64,000 nucleotides of DNA, from the NCBI GenBank assembly GCA_028826165.1, contig JAPDFW010000056.1, positions 372,001-436,000 on the forward strand. Reading direction: 5' to 3'. Shown here one piece after another: positions 44,077 through 52,600 of this stretch. Position 1 is the first letter of the stretch, and every line of letters begins with the position of its first letter. Under the pieces are notes generated by a model. It saw nothing but the letters and a program-made list of their open reading frames with translations. It was not told the origin of the DNA and made no database searches. The DNA comes from Anaeramoeba ignava BMAN. Lineage: Eukaryota; Protista; Anaeramoebae. The position numbers and the translations under genes are program-made.

Positions 44077-46227
44077 ATGGAATCATTACAAAAATTTAAA
44101 TTAGAATATGAAAAATACGCAACTATTCCAACAATTTCATCAGGGAAATTATTTTTAAATCCAAAAGATCAACAATTATTTTCTTTTCTTACATTTAAAC
44201 AAACACATTTTCCAGCATTAACTAAAACAACTTTTCTAAATAATTATCATATTGATCTTGCCCAGAAAACAAGCATCAAAATTCCATTTCCAATTGAAAT
44301 TGACAACGAGACTCTTTTCGCCTTTTCTGAAAACGGGAATTTTTATGCAACAATAAAAAGTACTGATGAAAATAATACAACTTTGATTTCTGTTTGGGAT
44401 CAACACAGAAAACTTTTCACTCAATCAATCAAGGATATGCATAAGAAAATTTACAACGAATCCTTCTTCTCATGCTTTTCCTTTTCGCCAGATAACTCAA
44501 AGCTTCTTTATGTTGCTGAGTTTTTTGACAAAGAAAACCAGAAAAACCCAAATTTTGGAAATAAATCCTTTTGGGATAACGATTGTATCCGTAACCAGCA
44601 AGATTGGGGTGAAGCCTTTTCTGGATTATCTACACCCATGTTGTTTGTTTTTGATATCAAGCAAAAAACCTCGCAAATTGTAAGCGGAATCCCTGAGAAT
44701 ATCAGTCCTGGATCTGGGATCTGGAAAGATGATAACACAATCATATTTAATGGATATGAAAAACCAGATGTTTTAATGGGAATTGAATATTGCTACAACC
44801 GCAAATCAGCAATCTATCAAATTTCCCTTGACAAAGAGTCTCCAAATCTTGAAAGATTAACCACTTTTTTCACAGTGCGTTCACCAAGATTAAACTCAAC
44901 AAAAACACAACTTGCTTTTCTTGCTGCTGATGAATTCAAAGTTCATAATAATCCTGTCAAACTTTGCGTGCTTGATCTTCAAACAAACAAAATTCGTGTT
45001 CTTGTGGATGTTCCCAAATCAAAGAATGTCAAGGATGATTATGTCTTGTTTGAGGAAAAGAAGATTTACTTTCCTGGTTTGTTTCTTCATCAGCTTATTG
45101 AAAATTGTTGGATTGAAAATGACACAAAAATTATATTGAATACGCAATGGAAAAGCACTGGTAAAATTCTTTCTGTTGATGTTACTCAAGAAAATGCACA
45201 AAATCAACAGTTTGCAAATGTATCTTTTATCACAGATCCTTCTGACGATGGAGTTTGGTCTCTTTTAGATTCCAATCACAATTCTATTATCGCAAAATAC
45301 TCGACGCCGTGTCTTCCTTATCAGGTTTATTATGGAAATCCAATCGATTTTATAAGCTCAAATATGATCCAAAAAAATTGTGTTTGTTTGGAAAATTCGT
45401 TGGATGTGATTAATATTGATAATGATTTCGAGTGGAGTTTGCATCAGATACATGTTGATGATATCGAATCTGAATATGAGATGATTGTTCTCCAAAAAAA
45501 GCGCTCAACAAAAGAATCTGAAGAAAAGAAATATGCTCTTGTAAGTCCGCATGGTGGACCTGTTTCCATTTATTCCACATCGTTTATATTCACAAATCTG
45601 TTTCTTTGTTCTCTTGGATATCAAATCCTTATTGTTAATTATCGAGGTTCACTTGGGTTTCATCCAAAAATACTCAATTCATTAACAGGAAAAGTTGGAA
45701 CACAAGATATTAATGATGTTCAAAATGCTGTGAAATTTTCTCGAGAGAACCAAATCATCTCTGAAAAAACTCAAATTGGAGTTATTGGAGGTTCACATGG
45801 AGGATTTATCACTACACATCTTATTGGACAATTTCCTGATTTTTACAAAGTTGCTGCTGTTCGAAATCCTGTGATTAATATTGCCATCATGAGCACAACA
45901 TCTGATATTCCTGATTGGTGTACTGCTGAAACAGATATTCCAAAACAGCCTTTTACACTCAATTCGGATGATTTAAGAGAAATGTGGAATGCTTCCCCAA
46001 TCCGTTATGTTGATAATGTGAAAACTCCCATTTTAATGTTAATTGGAAATGTTGATCGACGTGTTCCAAAATCACAAGGAATAGAATTTTATAAGTCTTT
46101 AAAATTACGAGGAAAAACAACCGAAATTGTTATATATGAAAAGGATCGACATCCATTATCTCGACCCGAAACACAAGCAGATATGTTTATTCGGATGGCA
46201 CTTTGGTTAGAAAAGTATTTTGATTAA
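44077..46227 (+). CDS. APEH: Acylamino-acid-releasing enzyme (S9C peptidase), intronless
   Basis: QDWGE, YCYNRKS, PHGGP, VNYRGSLGF, nucleophile GGSHGGF, RNPV, SDIPDW, DRRVP, catalytic His in DRHPL. Confidence 0.93.
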   Translation: MESLQKFKLEYEKYATIPTISSGKLFLNPKDQQLFSFLTFKQTHFPALTKTTFLNNYHIDLAQKTSIKIPFPIEIDNETLFAFSENGNFYATIKSTDENNTTLISVWDQHRKLFTQSIKDMHKKIYNESFFSCFSFSPDNSKLLYVAEFFDKENQKNPNFGNKSFWDNDCIRNQQDWGEAFSGLSTPMLFVFDIKQKTSQIVSGIPENISPGSGIWKDDNTIIFNGYEKPDVLMGIEYCYNRKSAIYQISLDKESPNLERLTTFFTVRSPRLNSTKTQLAFLAADEFKVHNNPVKLCVLDLQTNKIRVLVDVPKSKNVKDDYVLFEEKKIYFPGLFLHQLIENCWIENDTKIILNTQWKSTGKILSVDVTQENAQNQQFANVSFITDPSDDGVWSLLDSNHNSIIAKYSTPCLPYQVYYGNPIDFISSNMIQKNCVCLENSLDVINIDNDFEWSLHQIHVDDIESEYEMIVLQKKRSTKESEEKKYALVSPHGGPVSIYSTSFIFTNLFLCSLGYQILIVNYRGSLGFHPKILNSLTGKVGTQDINDVQNAVKFSRENQIISEKTQIGVIGGSHGGFITTHLIGQFPDFYKVAAVRNPVINIAIMSTTSDIPDWCTAETDIPKQPFTLNSDDLREMWNASPIRYVDNVKTPILMLIGNVDRRVPKSQGIEFYKSLKLRGKTTEIVIYEKDRHPLSRPETQADMFIRMALWLEKYFD

Positions 46228-47155: not shown

Positions 47156-49519
47156 TCAATAATGTAAATAAATCGAAAAAATTAAAATAAAAATTGTGAG
47201 GAAAGAAAAAAATGATCGAGGATTATCAATCAAATAAACTAATGGCCACAATAAAACACGAACCAAAAAGCGTAATGAATCATGCTTGGAAATGAAATCT
47301 GCAATAGGAGGAGAAACATAATAATAAAACTGGGTTAATTTATTTGGGAAAATATTGTCTCTCATCCAACGCAAAGAATCCAATTTAGGATGCATTGAAG
47401 TACCATAAGCAGCAGTTGCAATAAAACAAGCAGACTTTTTTCTGGAATATTTTGGAGCAGCACTGTAACATAGATCTGAAGATTGATTCAACATCGGCGC
47501 ACTTCTCATTGCTGAATATTCTTCTTGATAATCCATTGGATTCAAAGAAGGAACATCAACAAGTTCCATTTCCTCAATTTCTCCGTCATTGTCCCTTTCC
47601 TCAACAGCAACGAAACTTGTGTGTTTGCTTGCTAATCCATATTTGGTTGCCAACTCAACAATTTTATCCTTGTCCTCAATATCTGCCATTGTCAACTCCT
47701 TGATCAAAGCCTTAGCTGCCAACGTCTTGATAATGTCATCGTAAATTATCTGCACAGAATCCAATGAAAGCTTGAAACAAACTTCTTCTCCTGTTGGAAG
47801 TGCTGCTGTCAATTTCACAACCTTTCCTTTGATGTTGTTAATGTCATCAGCAAGAAAGCCATAAGCAATAAAACGGTCGTGATTGAAGATGGGAGGCAAT
47901 ACTTTTGGAGCTTGGTCAATATTAAGTCCATCCCAATCAATTTTGATTTGTGTCAATGCCGGTTGCATTCCTCTTTGTATTTGTTTGATCACTTTTTTTT
48001 CAAGATCTTTTCCTGAATCATCGATAAAAACCGCTTTTCCATTCCCAGCACGAGCAATTCCGTTGACAAGTTCTCGCGAAGCTCCTGCGCCAATGCCAAA
48101 GCTAAAACAACGGGCAGTAGAAGAGTTTCTGCGGATCATTTTCATGACTTCTTCTGTGTTTGAAATGTCACCGTCAGTCAAAATAAATATCTGTCTTGGT
48201 CTGTTTTTTGCCGGAATTATTGAGAAGATTTGTTCAAGTGGTTTGTGTAGATCTGTCCCTCCAAGATCAGCTTGCATGATTGACACATGTGTCAATGCCT
48301 TTTCTCGAATTTCCTTACTTATTTGCACTGATTCGTCAAAAAGTTGTTCCACTTTTGTGCCAAAGCCAATTACATTGAAATAACAATTATCAGGCAGTTG
48401 TTTGATCACTTGTTCCATTGTTTTTGATGCTGATCGTATTCTGTCGCCTGACATTGACCCTGAACGATCAATAACAAAGATCATTTCCATTTCGAATTTG
48501 TCTTCCACTTTGATTTCAGGATAGAAAGTCACCATCATGCCAGGATCATGTTTTTTTTGATCTTTTTTGGGTTTTTTTTCGTGTTTTTCCTTTTGGTTTT
48601 TTTTCTTTTTCTTTTTCTTTTCCTTTTCATTTTTCTCCGGCTTGTTTTCTTTCGATCCTTCAACCCAAACACGAGGCTCGAAAGGTTGTTCTGTTTTGAT
48701 CTTTAGAACAAAATCTCTATCGAGACTTGTTGTTTTTTTAGGGTTGCCGAGTTCGATAGCAGCTGTGAATTTGGAAGGGTATTTTACATCAATGTCATGT
48801 GAAGGAGACAAGACATTAACAATCTTAGATTGCATTCCCACTTTGATGTCGACTTTCAACCCATAAGGCACTGAGCTGACATACTTCGGAGTGATTCTTT
48901 CAGCTTTTTCTTCTAGATTTTTGTTGGGTGGTGTGTATCTTGGAGAAATCACAGTTGGAAGAACAAACCGGATTTGGTCATCATCTTCAGCTTCCAGTTC
49001 CGCAACATAAAAAATGGAAATTACCACTTGTTTTTTAGATGGTAAATTCCCGACACTCAAAGTGAAAATATCTTCTGTTTCTTGTTCCATCAAATACGCT
49101 CCTATTTTTGTTTTTGGAATTAAATGGATTTTTATAAAACATGGATTAGGGATTATTTTATTTTGTTATTATTTTGATTTTGTTATTATTTTGATTTTAT
49201 TATTATTTTGATTTTGTTATTATTTTGATTTTTTGATTTTACCATGTCCTTGAGCTAAAGCATCATCATAGATTTGTTGTGCTTCATTTTTTTCTTTTGA
49301 TACTCCTTTTACAATTTTTCCATCAATATAAGCCTCAAAACCACAAATTGCTGCAGCTTCATCCATTGGAAATTTATAAACAGCTTCGATTGGATGATCA
49401 TAGTTGTTTTCGTATTTTTGTCGAACAACAACTTTTGCAACAAAATCAAAAATTTTGGCTTTAACAGAAACACCAACAAGTGGAATATCTTCTTGAGTTT
49501 TTGAAATTAAACCAAACAT
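47156..49519 (-). CDS. VIT + vWA domain protein (VWA5A/PARP4-like) with C-terminal CFI-box-CTERM domain and terminal TM helix; intron 49242-49102
   Basis: VIT: IEAVYKFP..AAICGFEA, GHGAYLME, FTLSVGNL. vWA MIDAS DRSGSM, GGT, ILTDG. Tail CFIATAAYG..LRWMRD..FYYYVSPPIA..RVLLWPL. Confidence 0.9.
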
Positions 49520-49683: not shown

Positions 49684-52600
49684 ATGTTAAATTTTGAAAA
49701 TCAATTTGTTATTCAAGAAAAATTAAAAGAACCATCAACTTCTGCAAAAAAAATTATTGATTCAATTAATTCAATTATTTCTGATAAAAAACAAACCAAA
49801 AAAATTAGATCTCTTCTTCAAGATTTATGTATTTTTCGAATTGAACAACATCAAATTGATAATTTTTTAAGTTGTGCATTTAAAAGTAAATTCCAAAACA
49901 AAACCAAAACCAAAAGAAAAAGAAAAAGAAAAAGAAAAATTGTTTTGAATTTACAGATAAAATTTTATTTTCTGTTTAGTTTTAAGTCAATATGACAACG
50001 AAAAAATTATTCGATTAACTCATTATTTAATTACAAGTCTTGGCAAATTAGACTTAAAGCAATCAACTGTAAATAAATTAATTATTTAATCAAAAGAAAA
50101 ATAATTATTTAAGTTTCAATAGAGTTTATATAACCAACTTGAGAAAGAGATTAAATCCACAAATATTGGTAATCAAATATTATCTATCCATACTTTAGGA
50201 ACTTGTTTATGTGTGAATACATTCAAGGGTAGAAAAATCTTAAACAAAAAAGAAATTCAAATCAAAATCAAAATTCAAATCAAAATTAAAATCAAAATTA
50301 AAATCAAAATTAAAATCAAAATTAATTTAGAGAGTTTTCTTAATTATTTGATTGAACGAATGGAAATGGGTTTTCAAACACAAATAACACCCAAAAAGAA
50401 AGGATTTTCAAAGAAATCGAAACAAAGTGATGATTATATATTTCTTCAAACTGCTTGTTTAAAAGTAGCAGCTATTAGATTTCCTAGATCACAAAAATTG
50501 AAGTCTGTAAATAGAAAAACAAAATTAAAATTAATTTATAAAATTAAAATTAATTTATAAAATTTAAAATTAAAATTAATTTATAAAATTAAAATCAATT
50601 TACAAAATTAAAATTAATTTATAAAATTAAAATTTATTTATAAAATTAAAATTCATTTACAAAATTAAAATTTATTTATAAAATTAAAATTAATTTACAA
50701 AATTAAAATTAATTTATAAAATTAAAATTTATTTATAAAATTAAAATTAATTTATAAAATTAAAATTAATTTATAAAATTAAAATTAATTTATAAAATTA
50801 AAATTTATTTATAAAATTAAAATTATAAAGATTGTCTTAAAATTAATGGAATCAAAAGATGAAGAGGCTGTGAGACTCTCTATTAATTTGTTTTATGGGT
50901 TGATGAATAAAAATATTAATATGTATCAATCTTTAATGGGCATCCTTCCAACTAATGCGACTTTTGAATCAAAATTTATTGTGAAGAAAAAGCATACGAA
51001 AAAAAAGGATGAGAAAAATTTTCTGCAGAACCCAGAAATCAACCTCACAAGCATACAATCTCAATCATCATTTCTACGACTGATTGAGAAGATGATGGTT
51101 TCAATTCCAAAAGAAGCCAAACCAAAATTCTACAACGCTGTACTTTTGGTGATGAAGTACAACATCAATCTTGAAGAATTGAATACAGGATCACGCAAAA
51201 ACGAGCCAGAAAATAGTAAGACCAACGAAAGCCAAGGAGAGCAATCAGCACAAACAACAAGCAAAGTGGGGCTCACACACCAAATGAAGCATCTTGAGAT
51301 TTTTCTTGCAGGAATTGGAGCACTTTCAAGTGGAGAAAATTCATGGGAAATAATGCATCAATTATCAATCAATCATCAAGAATTCCCACTCAATAAACGA
51401 GCGCATAACTTCGAGCAATTCTCGGAACAGAAATACTCCATAAACGACTTTATTTTGCAGCAAATTTACATTATAATTTCAAGATACAACTTCCAATTAC
51501 GCAAATCAAGATCCTCCGGCTTCTCTGTTTTTGGAGATCCGGAAACAACATCCAGTAAAATAGATTTTGTTCCTGAAAAGAACCCACGCGATATCGGCAA
51601 TGCAGAGCTTGTCGGTACTCTTCGCGCATTGTGCAAATTTGTTACTTCTTTTAATTCTTCAAATCCGCCCAATAAATTTGCCAAGAATTTAAGCATTTTC
51701 CATCCTATTCAGAACCAACTTTATGAACTTGCGAGCTTGTCAAAATCACCAACAATCAAAATGTGGGTTGTTTGCTCGCTGATTTGCTCGTATCAACCAC
51801 CTCACAACTTGCAATCACAAGAATCAGCTCCAGTTCAATCCCAGCAAACTCAGCAATTGCAAAATGTGTATGAATTCCAGAACCAGAATTCCTTCAAGAT
51901 TCTCCAGGAAATCATCATCAAGGAGATCAAAAAGAAAACCTTTACGCCACATCTTTTTAATTTCATTTTGAAAACATTTGAAGAACGACTTCAAATCACA
52001 CCAAAAATCACCCCAGTTGCACTAAGTATTTTCCAGAAGGTTTCACAGAAATCAATCGAACTATTCGAGTCTTCACTCCTTGTTTCTCATTTCGAGAAAA
52101 TTATCCAATTCAACTCATATAATAGAATTCTTATGGAAACAATCATAATTATTCTTGATTCTGATCCAAAACCAGAGTTTTTTCTCACACTAAAAAATAT
52201 CAAAAGCAAAATTATCCATTTCGTTGGGAATCAAATACATAAAATACTTGGGCTAAGTGTGGATTCTTTGTATTCCCCACTTGCACAAGACAATCCTTCA
52301 ACAAATGCTGCCAAAACTCTTCTTGATTCGATTATTCTTCGATTGAAGCATTTTGCTATTTTGGGTGATTATGATCTCCAGATTCAAAGTATTTTGGCAA
52401 TTTGGAAAATTCGCAATTAGACTTGGATCTCCTGTTCTTGAAAATGCAATTAACTTTCTTACTCAATTGAGTCAAATGAAATTCTTTTTCATGAGCTCTT
52501 TAATGTTTAATTTACTTCATATTCTTAAACTTATTCAAGCAAATCGTTCAAATTTAAAACAATTTCTTCAATCAAATTCCCAAAAATTAAATTTCCAAAT

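Follow-up and report, generated by a model that had tools for sequence, protein, structure and literature searches.

A CFI-box-CTERM module at the C-terminus of a VIT-vWA protein in Anaeramoeba ignava and its possible use as an inverted tail anchor

How does a domain that terminates exported proteins in bacteria and archaea come to stand at the end of a VIT-vWA protein in a eukaryote, and what might it do there? The question is raised by a gene in a 64,000-nucleotide stretch of the genome of Anaeramoeba ignava BMAN (GenBank assembly GCA_028826165.1, contig JAPDFW010000056.1, positions 372,001 to 436,000), hereafter called the window, which has a guanine-cytosine (GC) content of 22%. The gene has two exons on the minus strand and a product of 740 amino acids, which is residue for residue the same as a public entry, KAJ5077882.1 (P0240), to which the database gives the name "von willebrand factor a domain-containing protein 5a". 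We consider it rather likely that this is a resident, expressed and cytosolic VIT-vWA protein that uses a prokaryote-derived CFI module as a tail anchor, in an inverted topology.

A complete CFI-box-CTERM domain in a spliced and transcribed gene

The tail is a true CFI-box-CTERM domain, as an earlier note on this DNA had recognized from the letters of the sequence, and it forms a complete module. The NCBIfam model NF041770 (CFI_box_CTERM; 69 positions, curated cut-off 40 bits) matched the protein encoded by exon 2 with 65.4 bits (E 3e-18) over model positions 1-69 of 69, the last 100 residues alone with 70.1 bits and the full-length P0240 with 65.1 bits, and the window locus scored 69.7 bits (E 7.5e-18) in a six-frame scan of the 42.8-Mb genome. 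In an alignment of the window copy with 47 prokaryotic tails (48 sequences), all of the 21 invariant columns are kept in the window copy, and the match is therefore far beyond what chance would give. The family invariants are present as C-F-x-A-T-A-A-Y-G, L-R..R-D, Y..S-P-P-I-A and R..L.P. As delimited by NF041770, the alignment and an AlphaFold2 model, the box comprises residues 651-714 (47237..47428, minus strand) and starts with the invariant cysteine Cys651 (codon 47428-47426), which sits 90 residues from the C-terminus. Compared with the common prokaryotic form, it has a deletion of five residues after R-D, between helices 2 and 3.

The box is followed by a single transmembrane helix (residues 722-740, 47159..47215, minus strand), which comes after the motif D-N-P-R and ends at the last residue, with no basic tail. 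A further hydrophobic helix had been noted at the end of the protein; the helix is indeed present at 47215-47159, but it is a standard part of the module rather than an extra. The layout of the prokaryotic tails is uniform, with a Gly/Ser/Pro-rich linker, the invariant Cys, the 69-residue box, an (N/Y)-P turn, a transmembrane helix of about 20 residues and an Arg/Lys-rich end. The prokaryotic module thus consists of CFI box, transmembrane helix and basic tail, and the terminal helix of the window protein is therefore integral to it. AlphaFold2, run on the alignment, predicted five helices at residues 12-18, 24-36, 39-58, 60-78 and 80-99 of the 100-residue tail, with a mean predicted local distance difference test score of 83; the last of these is the terminal helix, residues 720-739 of 740. 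With a template-modelling score (TM) of 0.85, the tail model superposes on C-termini predicted for DUF11, fn3 and Flg_new_2 proteins of bacteria and archaea, and the nearest clusters listed in ESM-Atlas were all 100% Bacteria or Archaea.

The gene itself has the structure of a eukaryotic gene. Exon 1 (49243..49519, with the ATG at 49519-49517) encodes residues 1-92 and the first base of codon 93, begins at the same start as P0240, and holds an N-terminus without a signal peptide together with VIT model positions 2-79. It is separated from exon 2 (47159..49101, residues 93-740 according to the open reading frame and the family scans, followed by the stop codon at 47156..47158) by a spliceosomal GT...AG intron of 141 nucleotides (49102..49242, phase 1, 15% GC), which splits the VIT domain. 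The two exons were searched separately, with whole-protein coordinates taken from P0240. Model positions 83-111 fall on exon 2, and the match runs unbroken from 2 to 111 in the public 740-residue protein; the VIT domain is continuous only after splicing, and the intron must therefore be real.

Exon 2 encodes, in this order, the end of the VIT domain, a Lys-rich low-complexity insert, the vWA domain, the post-vWA body, a linker, the CFI box and the transmembrane helix. The family scan placed the VIT domain at residues 15-124 of P0240 (122 bits) and the vWA domain at residues 298-460 (47999..48487, minus strand; VWA_3 100 bits for residues 298-451, VWA 50 bits), with an intact D-x-S-x-S motif (DRSGS) of the metal ion-dependent adhesion site (MIDAS) type. 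The post-vWA body is conserved and ends in ...T-S-F-V-A-V-E-E, from where a linker of about 55 residues leads to the CFI box. The VIT domain begins at about residue 7-15 and is not preceded by a hydrophobic N-terminal segment, so that the first description of the carrier, as an intron-containing eukaryotic gene without a signal peptide, was correct in both respects.

Could the tail nevertheless be an artefact of bacterial contamination, chimeric assembly or mis-annotation, or else a decaying relic without function? The open reading frame is unbroken from the vWA domain to the tail, in a eukaryotic window of 22% GC with eukaryotic genes on the flanks. The tail has a GC content of 29.8% and a third-position GC content of 22%, which is host-like, as compared with 36-72% GC for the prokaryotic CFI loci. 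Furthermore, an independent transcriptome open reading frame from EukProt (P0001, 496 residues) runs from the Lys-rich insert through the vWA domain, the linker and the CFI box to the transmembrane helix and has the same end, with one substitution in the part shared with the window protein (98-99% identity). The junction between vWA and CFI box is therefore transcribed, and the tail is present in this transcript rather than spliced out. The Lys-rich insert lies at 48535-48700 in exon 2, between VIT and vWA, and the P0001 transcriptome contig breaks or diverges exactly there, which is probably an assembly effect of the A-rich tract.

A scan of the whole genome revealed exactly one further CFI locus, on contig C24 at about 660-662 kb, the tail of which was searched piecewise in the same manner as the window exons. 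It belongs to a VIT-vWA-CFI paralogue whose body is 47% identical to that of the window copy on contig C57. The paralogue has no intron in the VIT domain and two introns in the tail region, one of them inside the CFI box between ...I-N-S-L-R and W-L-R-D.... From the differing intron positions and the deep divergence it follows that the fusion predates an old duplication, and both paralogues keep the invariant CFI residues although their bodies are only 47% identical, which points to purifying selection on the tails. In the assembly, the C24 copy (approximately 659935-662400) has an in-frame TGA right after D-N-P-R-K-F-F-Q-F and before the transmembrane helix, which is what a decaying relic or an artefact might look like. 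The next frame continues with a hydrophobic stretch into a transmembrane segment of exactly the same length as in the window copy; the stop is thus either a one-base error in a run of T or a genuine frameshift that removes the anchor. Composition, introns, transcript and paralogy rule out contamination and chimerism, and taken together with the retained invariants in both copies and the intron inside the C24 box they leave the artefact or relic explanation with next to no credibility. As judged from these sequence features, the graft is both resident and old in the amoeba.

Origin of the module and of the VIT-vWA body

The relatives of the tail are overwhelmingly prokaryotic. An exhaustive search returned 9403 representative clusters at E <= 1e-3, and at least 575 CFI stretches were confirmed in species-representative bacterial and archaeal genomes, among them those of Geobacteraceae and other Desulfuromonadales, Desulfobacterales, Dehalococcoidia, Nitrospirota, Gammaproteobacteria, Oligoflexus, ANME-1 and Thermoplasmata. 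Because of this distribution, we infer that a transfer of the module from a prokaryote to a eukaryote is by far the most parsimonious direction. In the bacteria and archaea the module ends exported surface proteins, with the CFI box outside the cell and the Arg/Lys tail in the cytoplasm. A hydrophobic, signal-like N-terminal segment was found in 89 of 106 complete prokaryotic carriers by a crude hydrophobicity test, and the passengers include DUF11 domains, YVTN propellers, subtilases, fn3 domains and Flg_new_2 domains.

The window protein resembles the NF041770 proteins in that it matches the full model, keeps the invariants, has a predicted four-helix box with a transmembrane helix after it, and carries them at the C-terminus of a multidomain protein. 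It is unlike the prokaryotic members in that its carrier is eukaryotic and has no signal peptide, in that there is no Arg/Lys tail after the transmembrane helix, in that the Cys is preceded by a basic patch and not by an uncharged Gly/Pro linker, and in the five-residue deletion. The passenger is likewise different, since VIT-vWA is unseen on the prokaryotic CFI proteins.

In its body, the protein is like the VWA5A/PARP4-type proteins (PF08487 with PF13768/PF00092): it has an N-terminal VIT domain, a MIDAS-bearing vWA domain and the ...T-S-F-V-A-V-E-E end, and no signal peptide. Unlike them, it lacks the helical C-terminal domain (W-A-T-A-x-A-L...E-W-x-L). That this family normally ends in a helical domain, as had been stated at the outset, was borne out by the C-termini inspected among the 119 nearest body homologues, with the exception of a sponge-type group, and by several paralogues in the same genome. 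About 13 VIT-vWA paralogues are encoded in A. ignava, of which several (on C5, C70, C71 and C59) keep the helical domain, and the CFI box is found only on the C57 and C24 copies. In the window protein, the usual helical domain is thus replaced by the linker, the CFI box and the transmembrane helix. The sponge-type VIT-vWA proteins (P0230, P0171, P0201, P0224 and P0229; about 930 residues) differ again at the C-terminus, where they have a region without a Pfam match whose C-W-L-D and C-G-H-F motifs recall a Cys protease.

The CFI tail is not confined to the two A. ignava genes. A word-index search with the window tail missed four metagenomic tails on eukaryote-like contigs (P0243, P0250, P0244 and P0245), which were recovered by the exhaustive search; three of them have VIT-vWA-family sequence upstream. 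P0243 (CFI box 69 bits) lies on a contig of 11.2 kb and 53% GC (L111; ENA ERZ15610578 NODE_8117), in the neighbourhood of genes for a P-type ATPase and cofilin/ADF and of an open reading frame of 1272 residues with PARP, VIT and vWA domains, which ends in ...T-S-F-I-A-V-E-D...V-D-E-I-P-H-C-S-S-W. The 78-bp gap between this reading frame and P0243, both again searched piecewise, opens with GT, closes with AG and leaves the reading frame intact when removed, and its flanks are contiguous in the homologue P0250. The gap is therefore intron-like, and positions 5400-11047 of L111 almost certainly represent a single gene with PARP-VIT-vWA, a Ras-like domain, a polyproline segment, an acidic region, the CFI box and a transmembrane helix. 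Its product would in effect be a membrane-anchored PARP4-like protein of an uncultured eukaryote, as predicted from the sequence.

P0250 lies on a JGI contig of 60% GC (L112) next to a gene for the RNA polymerase III subunit RPC5. It begins within the end of a VIT-vWA body, which matches residues 429-616 of the window body (blastp E 2e-15) and also TIGR03788, and continues through a linker that reads as WH2-like and polyproline to a CFI box of 83.8 bits and a transmembrane helix, ending in C-C-C. P0244, on a contig of 42% GC (L113), begins in ...T-S-F-I-A-V-E-D and has a weaker CFI box of 40.4 bits, in which F-I and Y are lost and the Cys is kept. P0245, with 124 residues and a CFI match of 53.7 bits, was found on a contig with genes for P4-ATPase flippases. 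The eukaryote-like contigs comprise, besides ERZ15610578 NODE_8117, JGI 3300048575 Ga0498942_032048, JGI 3300031119 Ga0061017_12510091 and one from ERZ17292901. Both A. ignava copies keep the Cys and the other invariant residues, as do P0243, P0245 and P0250. No named eukaryote other than A. ignava was found to carry a CFI tail in the word-index and exhaustive searches, including a word search with the P0243 tail as query; a tail in A. flamelloides was not seen, which may reflect gaps in the database or in the gene models. The initial picture of a single grafted gene therefore did not stand, since the paralogue and the four metagenomic tails show that the architecture is not unique to this amoeba gene, and the idea that it might already be common in eukaryotes is at least touched by them. 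The graft would accordingly either predate the window gene or have spread beyond it.

Where the fusion was made can be addressed from the two parts. One alternative is that it was made in a prokaryote and that the whole VIT-vWA-CFI gene was transferred intact, thereafter gaining introns and losing its signal peptide and its basic tail, a history that the earlier note had also considered. In its favour, VIT-vWA proteins with other C-terminal sorting signals do exist in bacteria. The marine proteobacterial sortase targets of TIGR03788 combine VIT-vWA with a C-terminal signal, and the window body matches positions 4-597 of the 629 in this model with 280.6 bits, as compared with a cut-off of 551.65 bits; these proteins are, however, bacterial and exported and carry a sortase motif instead of a CFI box. 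Both parts together were found in no prokaryotic protein. The 119 nearest homologues of the body, which include corals, a sponge, A. ignava P0232 and, among the bacteria, Acidobacteriota, all lack the CFI motif, the VIT-vWA body was found by tblastn in none of the best 80 prokaryotic CFI loci, and the only body match among the best 145 tail representatives is P0250, on the eukaryote-like contig with the RPC5 gene.

Separate trees of body and tail had been proposed as a check, and the best body trees placed the body of the window gene outside the bacteria. In these trees, the bacteria (36 or 12) form one clade with 100% support to which the A. ignava CFI pair does not belong, and the pair groups with the sponge-type eukaryotic sequences (98-99% in the Shimodaira-Hasegawa-like approximate likelihood ratio test, SH-aLRT; in the careful run, 98/91). 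The other A. ignava paralogues do not join the pair, which counts in favour of an intact transfer. The bodies of L111 and P0250 form one group (100/100), the long branch of which leaves an unresolved backbone. In the tail tree, the nearest neighbour of the A. ignava tails, though the tree is weak, is a "short" CFI subfamily without the transmembrane helix.

The members of this short subfamily (on L114, L115 and L116; P0264, P0249 and about 14 others) end in a basic amphipathic helix. They have Flg_new_2 passengers, the same five-residue deletion as the A. ignava tails and a similar L-P-x-K-x-T motif. They lie on contigs of prokaryotic or viral appearance, which are compact and co-directional and carry an intein-containing glycosyltransferase.

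Several observations weigh against a prokaryotic module on a eukaryotic scaffold that serves as a membrane anchor. The best-scoring sequence hits of the body are bacterial VIT-vWA proteins (40% identity, 369 bits; animal proteins and another A. ignava paralogue score 303-314 bits). In approximately unbiased (AU) tests with 26-28 rows under LG+G4, forcing the CFI pair to group with the bacteria costs 22 log-likelihood units (p-AU 0.053), so that this grouping is only marginally disfavoured, and forcing all four CFI-carrying bodies into one clade costs 7.3 units (p 0.044), which is borderline. The tail tree, with 78 columns and 2 starred branches out of 81, lacks resolution and is compatible with a single origin. 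The C24 paralogue has, in the assembly, the in-frame stop just before the helix that would be its anchor. With regard to the domain itself, a Foldseek search of the PDB with the tail model gave nothing at E <= 0.001, a wide VIA-align search for solved folds reached a Z of at most 4.0, a noise level for helical models, and a literature search on CFI-box-CTERM and its motif gave no paper mentioning the domain. The main text of the Anaeramoeba genome paper reports many transfers and mentions neither vWA nor the CFI-box domain.

On balance, we consider an intact transfer of the whole gene decidedly improbable, and a eukaryotic origin of the body likely from its position in the trees. Of the proposal that a laterally acquired module was grafted onto a eukaryotic scaffold, the first half is well supported by the prokaryotic distribution of its relatives, while the second is held with more caution, given that a bacterial affinity of the body is rejected only at the margin. 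What appears to be new in this protein is the replacement of the usual helical C-terminus, a combination of VIT-vWA and CFI box that was not found in the prokaryotic sequences searched, the occurrence of CFI tails in four eukaryote-like metagenomic sequences as well, and the rearranged charges in the eukaryotic tails.

Charge layout and predicted membrane topology

The distribution of positive charges differs strikingly between 222 prokaryotic tails with a transmembrane helix and five eukaryotic tails, when Lys and Arg are counted in the 12 residues before the Cys and in the segment after the helix. The prokaryotic tails have a median of 0 before the Cys, with three or more in only 11 of 222, and a median of 4 after the helix, with none in only 2 of 222. 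In the five eukaryotic tails, one of which has an acidic extension, the counts are 3-5 ahead of the Cys and 0-1 behind the helix. The window copy has none after the helix, and its invariant Cys is directly abutted by a basic patch (K-Y-S-R-K-K-S-A, residues 643-650, 47429..47452, minus strand) that contributes to a count of four in the 12 residues before it; the C24 copy has a basic K-R-D-R just before the Cys. By the positive-inside rule, such a flip of charges would be expected if the module had been inverted with respect to the cytoplasm. In that case the cytosol would hold the head together with the CFI box, and the C-terminus would be luminal or external.

The same topology is suggested by the missing signal peptide, by the helix at the very end of the protein and by the PARP and Ras domains on the L111 homologue. 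PARP and Ras domains are cytosolic by nature. Like the tail-anchored proteins of eukaryotes, the window protein has no signal peptide, a single transmembrane helix within about 30 residues of the C-terminus, few charges after it and a predicted cytosolic head. Ordinary tail anchors consist of the transmembrane helix only; the window protein adds a conserved, presumably prokaryote-derived domain of 64 residues next to the membrane. The idea of a tail anchor on a cytosol-facing membrane had been put forward in the earlier note, and it gains support from the charge comparison, as an interpretation of the sequences.

We hypothesize that the helical C-terminal domain of a VWA5A/PARP4-type protein was exchanged for a complete prokaryotic CFI module, and that the positive charges were shifted from behind the transmembrane helix to the front of the invariant Cys. 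With no signal peptide and with its only transmembrane helix at the extreme C-terminus, the protein would be inserted post-translationally as a tail anchor. Only the end of the chain would then cross the membrane, with the VIT-vWA head and the CFI box on the cytosolic side, such that the module may tether a metal-dependent protein-binding head, the MIDAS of which is intact, to an endomembrane. Because all invariant residues are kept although the transmembrane helix alone would suffice as an anchor, the CFI box probably has a role of its own at the membrane surface, for example in packing or oligomerisation.

The same surplus of conservation could also be explained if the module were still a processing or sorting signal, with cleavage or lipid modification on or close to the invariant Cys, whether the module acts by itself or through an enzyme of the host. 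The two A. ignava copies, P0243, P0245 and P0250 all retain the Cys along with every other invariant, which exceeds the needs of anchoring, and the residue before the Cys is small (A, G or S) in 99 of 109 prokaryotic tails. The layout also mirrors that of MYXO-CTERM, which has a Cys signature, a transmembrane helix and an Arg-rich cytoplasmic tail and is cleaved by myxosortase, a member of the CPBP family, in dependence on its conserved Cys residues (Guo, Haft & Wall 2025, PMC11980579). The prokaryotic CFI tails follow the same tripartite logic on exported proteins, with an invariant Cys, a transmembrane helix and an Arg-rich tail. However, the two sequences are unrelated, and the protease for the short MYXO-CTERM signature is known, whereas the CFI box is a helical domain of 69 residues, much larger than the known sorting motifs, for which no sorting enzyme is known. 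The eukaryotic box would moreover lie on the membrane face opposite to any ancestral partner, and P0244 has lost F-I and Y while the Cys was kept.

A partner enzyme acquired along with the module, Cys lipidation and cleavage had all been suggested initially, and nothing was found in support of them. All open reading frames of 80 prokaryotic CFI loci were clustered in a search for a conserved neighbour gene, and there was none. Clusters that did recur at these loci turned out to be antisense reading frames or generic histidine kinases, and were discarded as candidates for a partner enzyme. In view of these results, we regard a retained processing signal as unlikely, and continue to favor the hypothesis of an inverted tail anchor.

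A broader hypothesis, which we put forward tentatively and regard as rather doubtful in its entirety, is that the CFI box serves as an autonomous module next to the membrane, able to work on either of its faces, for instance through oligomerisation or through Cys-dependent acylation or self-processing. It would have been co-opted in inverted orientation in Anaeramoeba and in several uncultured eukaryote lineages, tethering to endomembranes a set of PARP4/VWA5A-like scaffolds, some of them with Ras, WH2-like and polyproline modules. The symbiosome network could be the membrane so targeted in Anaeramoeba.

If the interpretation as a grafted prokaryotic module is correct, the gene would represent a transfer from prokaryotes to eukaryotes at the level of the domain rather than of the gene, kept under selection in two paralogues, and the same module follows VIT-vWA-family sequence on three more eukaryote-like contigs. 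The charge flip predicts that the module is re-used in the opposite orientation to the cytoplasm. The gene also suggests that VWA5A/PARP4-like proteins include a membrane-bound subclass. A box able to work in the cytosol of a eukaryote would need no partner from the prokaryotic envelope. It may thereby offer an entry to an uncharacterised prokaryotic domain with about 9400 representative clusters.

Genes flanking the locus

The surroundings of the VIT-vWA-CFI gene are compact on the 5' side, where a gap of about 165 bp separates its ATG from a small, divergently transcribed open reading frame that starts at 49684 (49684-49995, plus strand). Further along the same strand, at 50846-52420, lies an open reading frame of 524 residues without a Pfam match. 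On the other side, about 0.9 kb past the 3' end, the gene converges with an intron-less gene at 44077-46227 (plus strand), which encodes an acylamino-acid-releasing enzyme of 716 residues with APEH_N and Peptidase_S9 domains.

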